Source: Oikopleura dioica (lineage: Eukaryota; Animalia; Chordata). From it: a DNA stretch of 64,000 nucleotides. Both the position numbers and the translations under genes were made by a program. Of the stretch, positions 59,801-63,648 are shown in pieces. Every line of letters begins with the position of its first letter. Position 1 is the stretch's first letter. Below the pieces are notes generated by a model. The model was given only the letters and a program-made list of their open reading frames with translations. It made no database searches and was not told the origin of the DNA. The stretch covers positions 15,934,001-15,998,000 of the forward strand of contig OU015567.1 of NCBI GenBank assembly GCA_907165135.1, given 5' to 3'.

Positions 59801-62800
59801 CAGAGAGGCCAAAAGAGAGGTTATAGCCTTAAATTACCTTGCCAATCTACGGGGGTGTCTTTCAACAACGACCGGGCTGATTTGCATGATTGACCAATCA
59901 CAGCACAGAATAATGCTTCATGATGGGAATCGCCCCGGTCGTTATTGAAAGATCCCCCGTAGGTTATTGAAGCCTGTTTCCTGACCTAACTACACGGGAA
60001 CCTGTCTCAACTCAGGCCCTGACCAGGAAAAACAGGCCTGTCTTTAGTCAGGGACAGAAACAGGGTTTCGAGATTTAATCCCAATTTTGGTCAGGTACAC
60101 AGGACAGGGCCAAAAATATCCCTTTTTACTCAGGTACACAGGACAGGGTCTCAAAAACAGGTCCTGTCTAAGGTTTTAAGACAGGTCAGGATGCCGAGCC
60201 CAGACTTTTGCTTTCACTTGAACTTTGACAGTCAAAGTTTGACTAATTATTTAGACTGACGTGCTTTTTTAAGGTTATGCAATTTATTTCTCCGATTTTT
60301 CCATTATCGACCCAGAACACTATATATATTTAGAATCAGTGAACAAAATCTAGAAACTTGACCGTTTTAGTTTTTCGAAATTCACTTCCGGTTACGATTC
60401 TAGAGCCGGAAGTAGGCGAAATTTTGGAGTCATGGTAAAGTGTGACCTATCAAATTTATGCGCAGAAGATTCTCAGTCATCTCATTATAGATATACTTGA
60501 AGAAACAGGCCCAAACGCGCTTAAACTGACCGGTAAAACTAAGAAAAAAGCATGAGTTAATGAGAAAATTTTCAATTTTTACCGGTCGTTTACCGGCGGT
60601 TTTTGACCGTGGTTAGACTCGGTTCCGATAAATAATGACTAGATTCGTAGTGAGCTTCAATTTGATAGGTAATATGCAGTTTTTTCTTATAAATTTCGTG
60701 AACTTCCGGCTCTAGAATCGTAACCGGAAGTTAATTTCGAAAAACTAAAACGGTCAAGTTTCTAGATTTTTTTCACTGATTCTAAATATATATAGTGTTC
60801 TGGGTCGATAATGGAAAAAATCGGAGAAATAAATTGCATAACCTTAAAAAAAGCACGTCACTGTAGTCATTTGAGAAAGAGGTTTATTATAAGGTCTCAG
60901 CGTGAACTATGCTAAAAGCTTCTGTCATTTTCAATCAGAATCGATCGTCAACCATCATTGCACCTAGTATGTTGTGAATGATCAGCGGTGCTTAAAATTA
61001 CGGTTCGTTCTTTTCGGAAATAAGCTTATGGTTCTCCGAATAAAAGACGCAGAAACGAGCGACATGCTATCGCATCTGTCGGAGTCGATCCGGATGGTTG
61101 GTAGAATCGTGGACATGCCCTGCAACGAGATGCACACAGATGCCTTCGTCGAAGAAGCGAAAAGAGTTGCGCTGGAAACGAAATCGAAAATGCGTCTAAT
61201 AAGTGGGGAAGAACTCAAAGACCAAGGTTTCGGAGGGCTTTGGAATGTTGGCAAGGCTGCGAGCAGGCCTCCTGCGCTCGTTGTTCTCAGGTATGTTTCG
61301 CGTCGTTGTGTTTCCCCTGATTTATTAATCAGTTCTAAATTGAACTAAAAATTCGCTAGGGTAGGCTAGGCAGATAGAAATCTTGAAAAGCTACAGAAAA
61401 TTTTCTGTCACAAACACCAGCCTTTAAAATTATTACTAATAATTTATTAGTCTAGCTTTTCGGGCAAATTAATTCCCGTTCAAAAAATAAGCGGGTGTTC
61501 TGTCATTTCAACTCCATAGATGAGCTCTCATTCGGTCGCACCATAGTACCTGCTTTAAAGACGCAACACCCCTACCCTTATTTTGTGGCCAGGGAGTAGC
61601 CTAGGCGATTTCGAGCCCTGTTTTTAAATTGAAAATTTCAACCAAAATTAAGCCACGAGCCCGAGGGTGCTCGAACAGCAATATCGTGGGTGGGCAAAGG
61701 AATTGTCTACGACACTGGGGGCCTGAGCATCAAAGGAAAAGTCACGATGCCAGGAATGAAAAGAGACTGCGCCGGAGCCGCTGCAATTTTAGGCGAGACG
61801 CCGTCTAATTGTTATTTGCTTACTTCTCAATTCAGGTGCATATCGAACTGCCGTAAAAACGGGTTTCAAAGAAACTCTTCATTGCATCCTTTGCTTAGCC
61901 GAAAACGCCGTAGGACCTGACTCGATAAGACCAGACGACGTTATTACTCTTTATTCCGGAAAGACTGTAGGAATGGGCTTCGTTTACAAAATTCTAGCAA
62001 TTTCTAGCTTCAGGAGTTCGGCTGAGCCATTCGAGCGGAGTTTGATTTATCTTGTCTTTTCTTTTTTTCAGATAAGAAAAACTAAGTTTGCCAATTTTCG
62101 CTCTAAACTTGCTCGCTCAAACGCTCATCTCGCTCAATTCATTTTTGAGAATTGTGCCACGATTAAATTTGATATTTTTTCTTTGCATAACCCTAACCCT
62201 TGTAACCCTACTAGCATGATTTTGAAAATGAAGAGGATCGGCGGTACTGTATCGCGATTCGCGAATGAAGCCCGAGACAGAAGTGAATAACACAGACGCG
62301 GAAGGAAGGCTAGTTCTTGGCGACGGGGTCGCATTCGCCAGCAAAGATCTCAAATCAGACATCATCGTCGATTTGGCGACGCTGACTGGAACGCAGAACA
62401 TAACAACTGGTAACGCAGAGTGTTGCCACTCGTTGGTCTAAAACTTTTGAACGCGCAGGAAAGCACCACGCCGCAATTTTGACAAACTCTGAAGAATGGG
62501 AAGGTCACTGCGTCGCTTCGGGAAAAGCGTCGGGCGATCACGCGTACCCGATCATCTACTGCCCGGAGTTTCAATTCACAGAGTTCGCCTCCTACGTCGC
62601 CGACATGAAAAACTCGGTCAACGATCGAATGAATGCTCAAACGAGCTGCGCGGGGATTTTTATCCATTCCCACTTGGAAGACGGCTTCGACTTTTCAGGT
62701 TCGTTTATTGTCATTTTTTTCCGTAGTCAAAGTTGCCCAAAAAGCCGAAAGAAGAAGTCAATCTTTGGGAGAAGGGGTCTTCGTTATCCCAGCCAGATTC

Positions 62801-63648
62801 CGCTTCAGTCTTTGTGCCAGGGAGCGCGATAATCTGGTTCATTTGCTCCACCAAATCCGCGCAAGATAGAATGTTTGGTCTTCTTTCGAGCTCCGACAGA
62901 ATTGTTGGCTTGCTGAAAATTATACTCATCAGCTGTCCTCGTTCTCCCCCGGTTTCTCCTAAAAGCAGCTGTCTTTGATAAGCTCGGGCAGTGCCTTACC
63001 GTTCGAGCACTTGTTAATCAACTTGTAGAGCGAGAAGTTCGACTCATTTAAATAAAAGCTCGGAGCAAAAGCTGTCGCTGATAGAAAAAGAGTGAAAACC
63101 TTGCCGAATTTCATAACCAATATTTTTCGCCTTTTTATTTTCGAAAACCTTCGGTTAGTTTATATATTCGTGCTGGCGATTTAATTTTGAATAATGAAGA
63201 AACATACAATATTTAGAACAACATTTCTGGGCTCGTGGATATGCCACTTGATGTGATCTAATTTTAAAGTTATTTATCCAATCGTTTAGGAACTGCTGTT
63301 CATATTGATATGGCCGGTCCCGCGGCGAGTGGAGAGCGAGCTACATCCTGGGGAGTCTCCTTCTTGCTCACGCTCTTCGGACAGTACAGCAGTAACTCCA
63401 CCATCCGAGCTATTGCTCCTCAGTCGCGGCTCGCCAAGTTGATACATTTTTTTCATAAACCGTCTTTTATATTTCTTCGTTTTATGTATTTTGGTGAGCC
63501 AAGCCCCGAAGCTATCGATGGAGGAGATTCCAGCGAAGAAACGACGCGTAGAAGAGTCAATTACAGTCAGTTCCACTCAACTCGAATGCTCTCAGTTCTA
63601 GTCAAAGTCTACCAGAAATGTCTAGCCCATTGCCATTATAAATGCTGA
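56858..63648 (+). CDS. NPEPL1: Aminopeptidase-like 1 (M17 family)
   Basis: [98 protein letters not shown]. Start and stop uncertain. Confidence 0.92.
57059..57290. mobile_element. CTGGGCTCGG-family MITE copy in a GA-AG intron of NPEPL1
   Basis: Both TIRs recognisable. Confidence 0.75.
58325..59063. mobile_element. Kolobok-like foldback element (arms over 300 bp)
   Basis: TTAA-GGGACCTGGGCGAG ... CTCGCCCAGGTCCC-TTAA; near-perfect long inverted arms with a short spacer. Confidence 0.85.
59068..59828. mobile_element. Second Kolobok-like element sharing the TTAA at 59064-59067
   Basis: TTAA-GGCTATAACCTCTCTTTTGGCC ... GGCCAAAAGAGAGGTTATAGCC-TTAA. Confidence 0.85.
60257..60860. mobile_element. 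Foldback element (arms about 150 bp)
   Basis: TGACGTGCTTTTTTAAGGTTATGC... vs ...GCATAACCTTAAAAAAAGCACGTCA; internal TTAA-GG...CC-TTAA at 60273-60843. Confidence 0.75.
62711..63114 (-). CDS. Small secreted prepropeptide-like protein nested antisense in an NPEPL1 intron
   Basis: Exons 63114-63000 and 62958-62711, 41-nt GT-AG intron, 120 aa; signal [17 protein letters not shown]; ends ...[18 protein letters not shown]. Confidence 0.65.

Follow-up and report, generated by a model that had tools for sequence, protein, structure and literature searches.

Amidated peptide hormones and their precursors

A glycine followed by dibasic residues is the established substrate signal for carboxypeptidase and PAM. 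Prohormones of the CRH/urocortin type carry a single amidated peptide at their extreme C-terminus, where it is followed by Gly-Lys(-Lys) and the stop codon. Among the hormones that end in a tyrosine amide, NPY/PYY have an RY-amide and amylin an NTY-amide, both ahead of GKR, and adrenomedullin has a GY-amide. Precursors of the pedal peptide/orcokinin (PP/OK) type are multi-copy and their peptides are not known to be amidated. Amidated polypeptides of about 100 residues are uncommon, and a precursor that lacks a conserved basic site ahead of its tail departs from the classical neuropeptide type. The usual rules for monobasic sites disfavour cleavage where P4, P6 and P8 hold no basic residue and P1' is aliphatic.

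Larvaceans are the sister lineage to the other tunicates and possess a very small nervous system. No larvacean or Oikopleura neuropeptide or hormone repertoire, and no precursor paper, was found in the literature searched, and a 2026 single-cell preprint makes no mention of neuropeptides. The sequence under study here is a 64,000-nt window of the Oikopleura dioica genome (GCA_907165135.1, contig OU015567.1, 15,934,001-15,998,000). It contains a small gene, one of a small family for which members are so far known from Oikopleura dioica-type genomes alone. We put the chances at slightly better than even that members of this family encode a secreted, disulfide-held polypeptide of ~100 residues which bears an amidated aromatic tail and has a signalling role.

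Structure of the nested gene

The original prediction described a minus-strand gene at 62711-63114, in which a signal-peptide exon is joined across a 41-nt GT-AG intron to a second exon to give 120 aa, nested in an intron of an aminopeptidase gene. All of these elements were found at those positions (Table 1). Translation of the joined exons gives 120 aa, and without splicing the reading frame ends after 51 codons. The host is a plus-strand M17 (NPEPL1-like) gene whose exon ends at 62698 (TCA G/GT) and whose following exon begins at 63290 (G/GA ACT). As had also been predicted, the end of the nested gene lies close to the host splice site, with 12 nt between the last base of the stop at 62711 and the G of the donor GT at 62699. 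From the position of the AATAAA (62704-62709), the poly(A) site would fall within the antisense of the M17 exon that ends at 62698. A hidden splice donor ahead of the stop was considered and rejected, as the last codons contain no GT and both the stop and the AATAAA are kept in all copies of the gene.

Table 1. Positions in the window of the features of the nested gene and its host intron.
Feature	Position	Strand	Remarks
Exon 1, coding part	63114-63000	-	ATG at 63114; 115 nt, phase 1; residues 1-38 and first base of Gly39
GT-AG intron	62999-62959	-	41 nt, phase 1, GTAAGG...TTTTAG
Exon 2, coding part	62958-62711	-	TGA at 62713-62711; encodes a helical region that includes Cys71, then a disordered linker and the conserved tail
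Predicted signal peptide, residues 1-17	63064-63114	-	Cut after A-F-A; hydrophobicity and -3/-1 heuristic
13-mer codons, residues 105-117	62723-62761	-	Core SFGF[LM]GNF[DN]Y common to all copies
Gly118-Lys119-Lys120, amidation donor Gly and two basic residues	62714-62722	-	Abuts the stop; invariant 7/7
TATA box, TATATAA	63160-63166	-	52 nt upstream of the ATG; function inferred from position and conservation
Polyadenylation signal, AATAAA	62704-62709	-	One base past the stop; overlaps or abuts the stop in every copy
Host intron enclosing the whole nested gene	62699-63289	+	591 nt; M17 aminopeptidase gene, PF00883 matches in two exons

The claim of an N-terminal signal peptide was borne out to the extent that a signal-peptide-like segment, recognized by a heuristic, is present. 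It consists of an n-region (MKFGK) and a hydrophobic core, with a maximum Kyte-Doolittle 9-mer of 1.9-3.0 across copies, and has small residues at -3/-1 (AFA/P, ASG/P, SFA/P). By the same heuristic (basic n-region, hydrophobic core, -3/-1) such a segment was found in 6/6 intact copies. Further along the protein, an RR pair occupies residues 64-65, and R104 stands directly N-terminal to a 13-mer (105-117) which is followed by G118-K119-K120 and the stop. The only cysteines, C36 and C71, are both invariant and lie 35 residues apart, 69 and 34 residues upstream of the 13-mer. An AlphaFold2 model of the exon-2 part, of low confidence (mean pLDDT 57.7), places three main helices and a short fourth one at exon-2 residues 3-49 (pLDDT about 70-77) and leaves the C-terminal 34 residues disordered.

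A family under purifying selection

Seven copies of the gene were compared: those of the window, TARA and the SRR23998815 orthologue, the paralogues A', B and B', and a decayed A, the first six being intact. They derive from three loci, of which one is nested in the M17 intron and two stand in tandem, intergenic and outside any host gene, ~3 Mb from the nested gene at C5:12,957,890-12,958,940. In the window lineage one of the two tandem paralogues is a pseudogene. Orthologues at the same site are 96% identical in amino acid sequence on TARA metagenome contigs and 85% identical in the diverged lineage, and the nesting in the M17 intron is the same on the TARA and SRR23998815 contigs. Paralogues at only 48-60% identity still share the signal peptide, the intron position, the two Cys and the tail. 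Indeed, the signal peptide, both Cys and SFGF[LM]GNF[DN]Y-GKK-stop are kept in all seven copies.

The gene architecture is equally stable. Exon 1 has a length of 3n+1 in all intact copies (115, 115, 115, 124, 121), and Gly is the codon at the intron junction wherever this was checked (window gene, A', B'). Intron lengths in the intact copies are 41, 41, 46, 42, 42 and 41 nt, so that indels are not multiples of three. TATATAA is found 41-66 nt upstream of the ATG in 6/6 intact copies and is absent from the pseudogene copy; the nested gene probably has its own promoter. All copies have the AATAAA adjoining the stop codon or overlapping it.

Purifying selection on the protein is evident between lineages. 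The window gene and its counterpart in the diverged lineage show a dN/dS of 0.16 (dN 0.096, dS 0.59; Fisher p 2.7e-9), and their differences are distributed over the codon positions as 15/8/33. The proposed frame is the sole stop-free frame of the six and has the lowest pN/pS, 0.20. Against L007, exon 1 has a dN/dS of 0.20 and exon 2 of 0.15; the exons are 83-85% identical with no indels, and the intron is 72% identical with a 5-nt indel. The helical region is itself under purifying selection, with a dN/dS of 0.24-0.3 between orthologues. Judged from these substitution patterns and from the recurrence of the architecture in the paralogues, the nested gene is real and under selection, far beyond chance.

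Homology searches, in which the two exon products were queried separately, found no homologues outside Oikopleura-type DNA, either with profiles (1.84 billion representatives) or by word index (5.8 billion proteins). The protein searches matched Oikopleura-type genomic ORFs (P0001, P0002, P0003, P0005). A bacterial repeat protein (P0004, E 1e-5) was judged to be a likely chance match to the helical, low-complexity-like stretch. The spliced full-length product was not found in the protein collections searched, in which even a 530-aa ORF from the window met with no entry from an Oikopleura proteome. Neither exon matched a Pfam-A family at E<=1, and paralogue B gave only sub-threshold chance matches. 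Back-translated motifs yielded 600 pattern matches in JGI metagenomes, none of them related, and the best ESM Atlas scores (0.85-0.87, to unnamed 48-aa clusters) were below a meaningful level. No paper of the searched literature contains the peptide strings. At the DNA level, a search for a repeat or transposon origin of the host intron matched only the two paralogues, so that both origins were discarded, and Rfam gave a chance sub-threshold match and no family on 62300-63500.

The conserved tail and its putative processing signal

A terminal glycine with two basic residues, the amidation signal of the original prediction, is present as Gly-Lys-Lys-stop, and orthologues and paralogues all keep it (7/7). 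Y-G-K-K-stop is invariant in the same seven copies despite synonymous variants of the glycine (GGA/GGC) and lysine (AAA/AAG) codons. The tail as a whole is conserved at the amino-acid level, with synonymous changes among copies (GGC/GGA, TTG/TTA, AAC/AAT, GAC/GAT, TAC/TAT). Over the last 17 codons, dN/dS is 0.02-0.11 in the comparisons that leave aside those of paralogue B against the other two loci, for which it is 0.42. Some of the constraint on Lys-Lys could stem from 3'-end formation, because AAA-AAA-TAA-A of the paralogues contains the AATAAA signal as well. However, in the window copy and its orthologues the stop and the poly(A) signal stand apart and GKK is kept all the same, and one copy has changed AAA to AAG.

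The genome was searched for enzymes that could act on such a tail. ORFs for PHM and PAL are neighbours on one strand at ~4.794 Mb of G000:C5 and match the rat PAM structures 1OPM and 3FVZ, indicating that the genome encodes a bifunctional PAM. A carboxypeptidase of the CPD/M/N type is found at ~2.63 Mb of C2, and at least six P-domain loci represent the convertases. Given the invariant tail, the GKK-stop and the presence of PAM, carboxypeptidase and convertases in the genome, C-terminal amidation of the tyrosine is plausible.

Cleavage ahead of the tail is a different matter. The original prediction had taken the 13-mer as the mature amide, for which the calculated [M+H]+ is 1466.695 and the [M+2H]2+ 733.851. 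Its release would need a cut at a single Arg, in a QR that precedes the tail in the window gene, both orthologues and the intact paralogue A'. At this position paralogue B has QT-SY in both lineages and decayed A has QT; moreover, P4, P6 and P8 hold no basic residue and P1' is Leu or Met. The 13-mer amide was therefore not upheld. The internal RR site fared little better: it is present at residues 64-65, but is RK, EK or GR in the other copies, and the next residue is Pro in 6/7 copies and Thr in B of the diverged lineage. No basic cleavage site N-terminal to the mature peptide is conserved across the seven copies. Conservation continues upstream of QR, where D, F and Q of EDPF.Q are invariant. 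Of the proposed peptide precursor there thus stand a real spliced gene, a signal-peptide-like segment, the GKK and the processing enzymes, but conserved cleavage sites do not support the 13-mer amide. An Arg or RR seen in one sequence is unsafe as a cleavage-site call, and comparison with the paralogues alters the predicted product, which is likely to be a longer amidated polypeptide.

Alternative readings of the locus

That there is no gene at all, and that a chance pair of ORFs owes its conservation to constraint on the host M17 intron or to an antisense regulatory RNA, is very improbable. As this explanation would have it, the host intron is fairly conserved from one lineage to the other in its non-coding parts too (72-96%). 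However, host-intron constraint would have to produce the codon-position pattern and a dN/dS that reaches its minimum in the proposed frame while stops interrupt the other five, and the intergenic paralogues retain the architecture with no host gene around them. One paralogue, moreover, has decayed in the manner of a coding gene, with relaxed constraint and frame-breaking lesions. If the gene is accepted, it may be asked whether its product is a classical neuropeptide precursor from which a convertase, cutting after Arg104 and perhaps at RR64-65, frees an active 13-mer amide. The QR of the window gene, both orthologues and A', the disordered acidic linker that the tail follows and the convertases, carboxypeptidase and PAM of the genome would all fit, yet we consider this unlikely. 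The QT of paralogue B in both lineages and of decayed A, the surroundings of the Arg (which go against the monobasic rules) and the replacement of RR, mostly ahead of Pro, speak against it. In addition, the invariant residues D, F and Q lie immediately upstream of the supposed cut, and selection acts on the helical region itself.

A non-amidated small secreted or extracellular protein, such as a matrix or house component or a defence peptide, is no likelier an explanation than the free 13-mer. GKK would then amount to a basic C-terminus and no more, or would owe its retention in part to a second role of AAAAAATAAA as poly(A) signal, which the overlap of AATAAA with Lys-Lys-stop in the paralogues allows. 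The absence of conserved internal processing sites and a folded helical part with two invariant Cys point the same way, and many orphan secreted house proteins are known in Oikopleura (PMC3390340). Against this, the window gene and its orthologues keep GKK although their poly(A) signal is separate, with AAA changed to AAG in one copy, and Gly118 is invariant through its GGA/GGC variants. Besides, Gly and basic residues at the end of a secretory protein are what carboxypeptidase and PAM, both encoded by the genome, canonically act on. The tail strings were not found in 11 text supplements of PMC3390340, which counts weakly against a house protein as these files may not list full sequences. Kinship with the PP/OK peptides, as a divergent chordate member, was also considered on account of SSFGF, NFD and DPFS, which resemble SGFGF, NFD and DPLS in short matches to orcokinin and starfish ArPPLN1 (PMC5656890). 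It was rejected as scarcely credible: the tail similarity is at chance level, with 28% of composition-preserving shuffles of the tail reaching the best local score or exceeding it, and the nested gene encodes a single-copy precursor with GKK and has no Pfam match.

A proposed product and its significance

For the longer amidated polypeptide, which we favour, the following route can be proposed. A 17-residue signal peptide would take the 120-residue product into the secretory pathway, leaving roughly 100 residues. The helical N-terminal part would be held by one likely disulfide, Cys36-Cys71, and an acidic disordered linker would join it to the aromatic tail, EDPF.Q..[ST]SFGF[LM]GNF[DN]Y. A CPD/E-type carboxypeptidase would then trim the terminal Lys-Lys, and the bifunctional PAM would convert the exposed Gly to leave a C-terminal tyrosine amide. 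The amidated tail is likely to be the receptor-recognition part of what would be a secreted signalling molecule. It may be retained on the long polypeptide, as we prefer, or be freed as a shorter fragment in the two paralogues with QR.

Whether retained on a disulfide-stabilised polypeptide of ~100 residues or released, such a tail would possibly mark a family of peptide hormones or neuropeptides that is specific to larvaceans and has not been described before, a tentative proposal to which we give somewhat less than an even chance. If true, an orphan receptor of the most compact genome among chordates would gain a new family of ligands, one member of which lies antisense in an intron of a housekeeping gene, the 3' ends overlapping. 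As a lineage-restricted set of secreted proteins that is backed by selection and always keeps the amidation signal, the family offers a candidate ligand with which to de-orphanise receptors and map cell types in Oikopleura. The locus also illustrates that very small genes can occupy introns of compact genomes, each equipped with a separate TATA box and with a poly(A) signal placed at its stop codon.

Comparison with known systems

The nested-gene precursor is single-copy and has an amidation signal, unlike the PP/OK precursors, which are multi-copy and whose peptides are not known to be amidated. Short F/G/D/S-rich motifs (S[SG]FGF, NFD, DP[LF]S) are what the two have in common (PMC5656890).

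Similar in layout, compared by architecture, are the prohormones of the CRH/urocortin type, in which a signal peptide, a pro-region and one C-terminal peptide are likewise followed by Gly and basic residues before the stop. The expected processing chain, from carboxypeptidase to PAM, is also the same. In contrast, no dibasic site ahead of the peptide is conserved in the nested gene, which matches no Pfam family at E<=1. Its pro-region is under selection and has two invariant Cys, and its tail is aromatic, Gly-rich and predicted to be disordered, rather than a long amphipathic helix.

The predicted C-terminal tyrosine amide, formed from Tyr-Gly-basic-basic, is shared with the Tyr-amide hormones, to which no sequence relatedness of the nested gene was detected. 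Unlike NPY/PYY/PP, the tail ends in F-[DN]-Y, where Arg does not precede the Tyr; a polyproline/PP-fold is lacking as well, and there is no match to a Pfam hormone family at E<=1. The disulfide ring of 6-7 residues that is found at the N-terminus of calcitonin/amylin/adrenomedullin peptides has no counterpart beside the 13-mer, from which the two Cys are 34 and 69 residues away on the N-terminal side.

A further comparison is offered by an Oikopleura precursor of LPQGFDFY-GKR (G000:C5 ~13.295 Mb, L024). Its Gly-Lys-Arg is internal, with more residues after it, unlike that of the nested gene, and nothing can be aligned beyond 4-5 residues of the tail (GFDFY vs GNFDY). The two are alike in that they lie on the same chromosome, are small and predicted to be secreted, and would each give an acidic-aromatic Tyr-amide.

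Gene Model and Host Intron

Reading the minus strand and translating it reproduced exactly the two-exon spliced model of the original prediction. When the exons are joined in silico they encode a product of 120 residues; the unspliced frame meets a stop after 51 codons. The product has a hydrophobic N-terminus (17 residues followed by Pro), and its landmarks are Cys36, the junction Gly39, RR64-65, Cys71, and R104. The C-terminus consists of 13 residues (105-117) followed by Gly-Lys-Lys-stop. Judged by its sequence, the host is at family level a plus-strand M17 aminopeptidase gene. 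PF00883 matches two host exons upstream of the host intron, and a 12-residue stretch can be read in the host exon downstream of it. The distance from the stop of the nested gene to the G of the host donor (62699) is 12 nt, in agreement with the spacing first proposed. The median intron of the Okinawa Oikopleura dioica assembly OKI2018_I69 (64.3 Mbp, 19 scaffolds) is 49 bp (PMC8008620).

Coordinates of the nested gene, its host intron, family copies, and other loci (G000, the window's own genome; L002, region of the tandem paralogues)
Feature	Position	Strand	Basis or detail
Nested gene, ATG	63114	-	strand reading of 62500-63400 and translation
Nested gene, exon 1	63114-63000	-	115 nt; translation
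Nested gene, intron	62999-62959	-	41 nt, GTAAGG...TTTTAG; translation
Nested gene, exon 2	62958-62711	-	ends TGA; translation
Nested gene, AATAAA	62704-62709	-	6 nt from host exon end
Host intron	62699-63289	+	591 nt; M17 aminopeptidase gene; encloses whole nested gene
Conserved upstream stretch	63175-63289		61-175 nt upstream of nested ATG
Intron-free ORF	37658-39250	+	530 aa
Paralogue A, window's lineage	L002 692-1089 (G000:C5:12957895-12958292)		pseudogene
Paralogue A, further sequence	L017		
Paralogue A', diverged lineage	L016 334-735		intact
Hydrophobic ORF	L002 2092-2874	-	260 aa
Copper-monooxygenase locus L012	G000:C4:12416301-12419444		
Copper-monooxygenase locus L010	G000:C4:3929177-3932392		
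Orphan precursor L024	G000:C5:13294000-13296500	-	

Since the AATAAA of the nested gene lies so close to the host exon end, its poly(A) site is expected inside the antisense M17 exon. The two convergent transcripts should overlap, 3' end against exon, at window 62680-62710.

Elsewhere in the window, a 530-aa ORF has relatives that carry PF14240 (YHYH domain), and its best match is a metagenome protein with 41% identity. The YHYH domain is mostly bacterial. A long uninterrupted ORF with such a domain inside an Oikopleura chromosome may have been acquired horizontally long ago or may belong to a poorly sampled family.

Orthologues, Paralogues, and Selection

In every search, exon 1 and exon 2 were used as separate queries. 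Two orthologous protein records were found: P0001, from TARA and other marine metagenome contigs, with 96% identity to the exon-2 product, and P0002, from a contig of run SRR23998815, with 85% identity. Both are nested at the same position, adjoining Peptidase_M17 exons. Comparison of the two exons with L007, the orthologue in the diverged lineage, gave a dS of 0.59 and a dN of 0.096 (dN/dS 0.16). The differences per codon position were 15/8/33, and the synonymous excess was significant (Fisher p 2.7e-9). There were zero indels in the exons, which are 83-85% identical; the intron is 72% identical and carries a 5-nt indel (41 vs 46 nt). Among the six frames of exon 2 tested, the proposed frame was the sole open one and had the lowest pN/pS (0.20), the five others containing 1-5 stops each with pN/pS of 0.33 to 3.2. 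A repeat check of the region found no repeat origin, and an RNA-family search found no known RNA family.

Upstream of the nested ATG, a stretch was found to be conserved between lineages to the same degree as the exons. Identity is 88% at 63175-63214, 78% at 63215-63264, and 96% at 63265-63289, with one difference in a 30-nt block at ~63231-63260. It may either enhance expression of the nested gene or help splicing at the host acceptor.

Two further family copies, paralogues A and B, lie in tandem at C5:12.958 Mb of the window's genome, and the corresponding pair (A' and B') was found on a single SRR23998815 contig (L016). Exon 1 has a length of 3n+1 in all intact copies (115, 115, 115, 124, and 121). 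These copies also share an intron at one place, after C-[SH]-N-G, with lengths of 41-46 nt not kept to threes, a TATATAA 41-66 nt before the ATG, and an AATAAA which abuts or overlaps the stop. Gly is encoded at the exon junction of the nested gene and of both copies checked (A' and B'). Just downstream of the tandem paralogues, a hydrophobic ORF of 260 aa resembles, by eye, a portion of a multi-pass membrane transporter.

Paralogue A of the window's lineage has no TATA box, and 14 nt inserted where exon 1 ends lengthen this exon to 129 nt and break the phase. Its dN/dS of 0.59 over the initial 64 exon-2 codons reflects relaxed constraint, and a TARA copy has an extra 1-nt deletion leading to ...FFQQ-stop. 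The lineage of SRR23998815 keeps an intact version (A'), so the loss is specific to one lineage and still under way among cryptic species of O. dioica. Moreover, the lesions match the decay of a protein-coding gene, which further argues for a coding family. On account of its orthologues, paralogues, and transcription signals, the nested gene is almost certainly real.

Protein Features and the Mature Product

Paralogues share 48-60% identity. Their invariants are the start M-K..K, a hydrophobic core, L-I, and C-S in exon 1, and L, I, P, I, S-E, and C in exon 2, followed by the tail block D-.-F-.-Q-..-..-F-G-F-.-G-N-F-.-Y-G-K-K-stop. The tail is conserved as protein, with synonymous codon variants (GGC/GGA, TTG/TTA, AAC/AAT, GAC/GAT, TAC/TAT, GGA/GGC, and AAA/AAG). 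Over the last 17 codons, dN/dS is 0.42 in comparisons between paralogue B and the two other loci, and 0.02-0.11 in the remaining ones. AlphaFold2, run on the exon-2 part with a 7-sequence alignment (mean pLDDT 57.7), predicted a helical segment at exon-2 residues 3-49 (pLDDT about 70-77), composed of three main helices and a short fourth, and a disordered stretch over the last 34 residues.

A secretory protein ending in ...Tyr-Gly-Lys-Lys is a canonical substrate for trimming of basic residues and then PAM. The GKK-terminated tail, on whose conservation in relatives the original prediction depended, proved conserved across orthologues and paralogues, with G-K-K-stop invariant. A check for a splice donor posing as the amidation signal was negative: no GT precedes the stop, and both the stop and its AATAAA are kept in the family. 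Because G-K-K-stop is kept over paralogues with dS above 1, a C-terminal Tyr-amide is the best reading of it. Secretion with C-terminal Tyr-amidation is the best-supported mechanism, and it is somewhat more likely than not.

The mature product was first proposed to be a 13-mer amide (residues 105-117), possibly a neuropeptide or peptide hormone; its release would need a cut after Arg104 of a QR site. In paralogue B of either lineage, as in the decaying A copy, this Arg is Thr, and the internal RR site is RK, EK, or GR in other copies, with Pro next in six of seven. Around the supposed cut, P4, P6, and P8 all lack a basic residue and P1' is Leu or Met, both of which are unfavorable under the usual rules for monobasic sites. 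Moreover, invariant residues extend upstream of the cut, and purifying selection also acts on the helical region that holds the two invariant Cys (dN/dS 0.24-0.3 between orthologues). The specific 13-mer is an unlikely product. Since QR and RR are not conserved, invariants lie upstream, and the helical region is under selection, we favor a longer amidated polypeptide. This polypeptide would comprise up to about 100 residues once the signal peptide is gone, and its disordered aromatic tail would act as the recognition element. For the paralogues that bear QR, release of a short peptide from the precursor is a live alternative.

Amidation Pathway Genes

Three loci contain Cu2_monooxygen and Cu2_monoox_C with no Pfam DOMON match nearby. 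At C5 ~4.794 Mb, a PHM-type ORF adjoins a PAL-type ORF on one strand, with matches to rat PAM structures (E 8e-18 for 1OPM and E 8e-33 for 3FVZ); adjacent ORFs of this kind indicate a putative bifunctional PAM. L012 and L010 are the copper-monooxygenase loci besides it. The L012 product has a hydrophobic anchor at its end and may be MOXD/DBH-like. A two-domain carboxypeptidase of the CPD/M/N subfamily is encoded at C2 ~2.63 Mb (E 2.5e-81 to duck CPD domain II), and the proprotein-convertase P domain was found at at least six loci. As far as gene content shows, the amidation pathway can run in O. dioica.

Comparison With Known Peptide Families

No Pfam family was matched, and the ESM Atlas yielded nothing usable. 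When 1.84 and 5.8 billion proteins were searched by profile and JGI metagenomes were scanned, only Oikopleura-type DNA came back; in protein collections, the family is present only as prokaryote-style ORF calls from genomic contigs. In short motifs (SSFGF/SGFGF, NFD, and DPFS/DPLS), the tail resembles orcokinin and the pedal-peptide-type peptides of starfish (PMC5656890). However, kinship was rejected, as the similarity was matched by 28% of shuffles, and the precursor architecture differs. The N-terminal ring that defines calcitonin, amylin, and adrenomedullin is absent from the product, as is the Arg-Tyr-amide that defines NPY-type peptides. On the same chromosome as the tandem paralogues, the orphan precursor L024 reads ...LPQGFDFY-GKR-GFPLL and is predicted to give a second acidic-aromatic Tyr-amide peptide; its likeness to the nested-gene family (GNFDY-amide) is confined to a few tail residues. 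The nested gene belongs to a well-known kind of gene, of which it is a new member restricted to its lineage.
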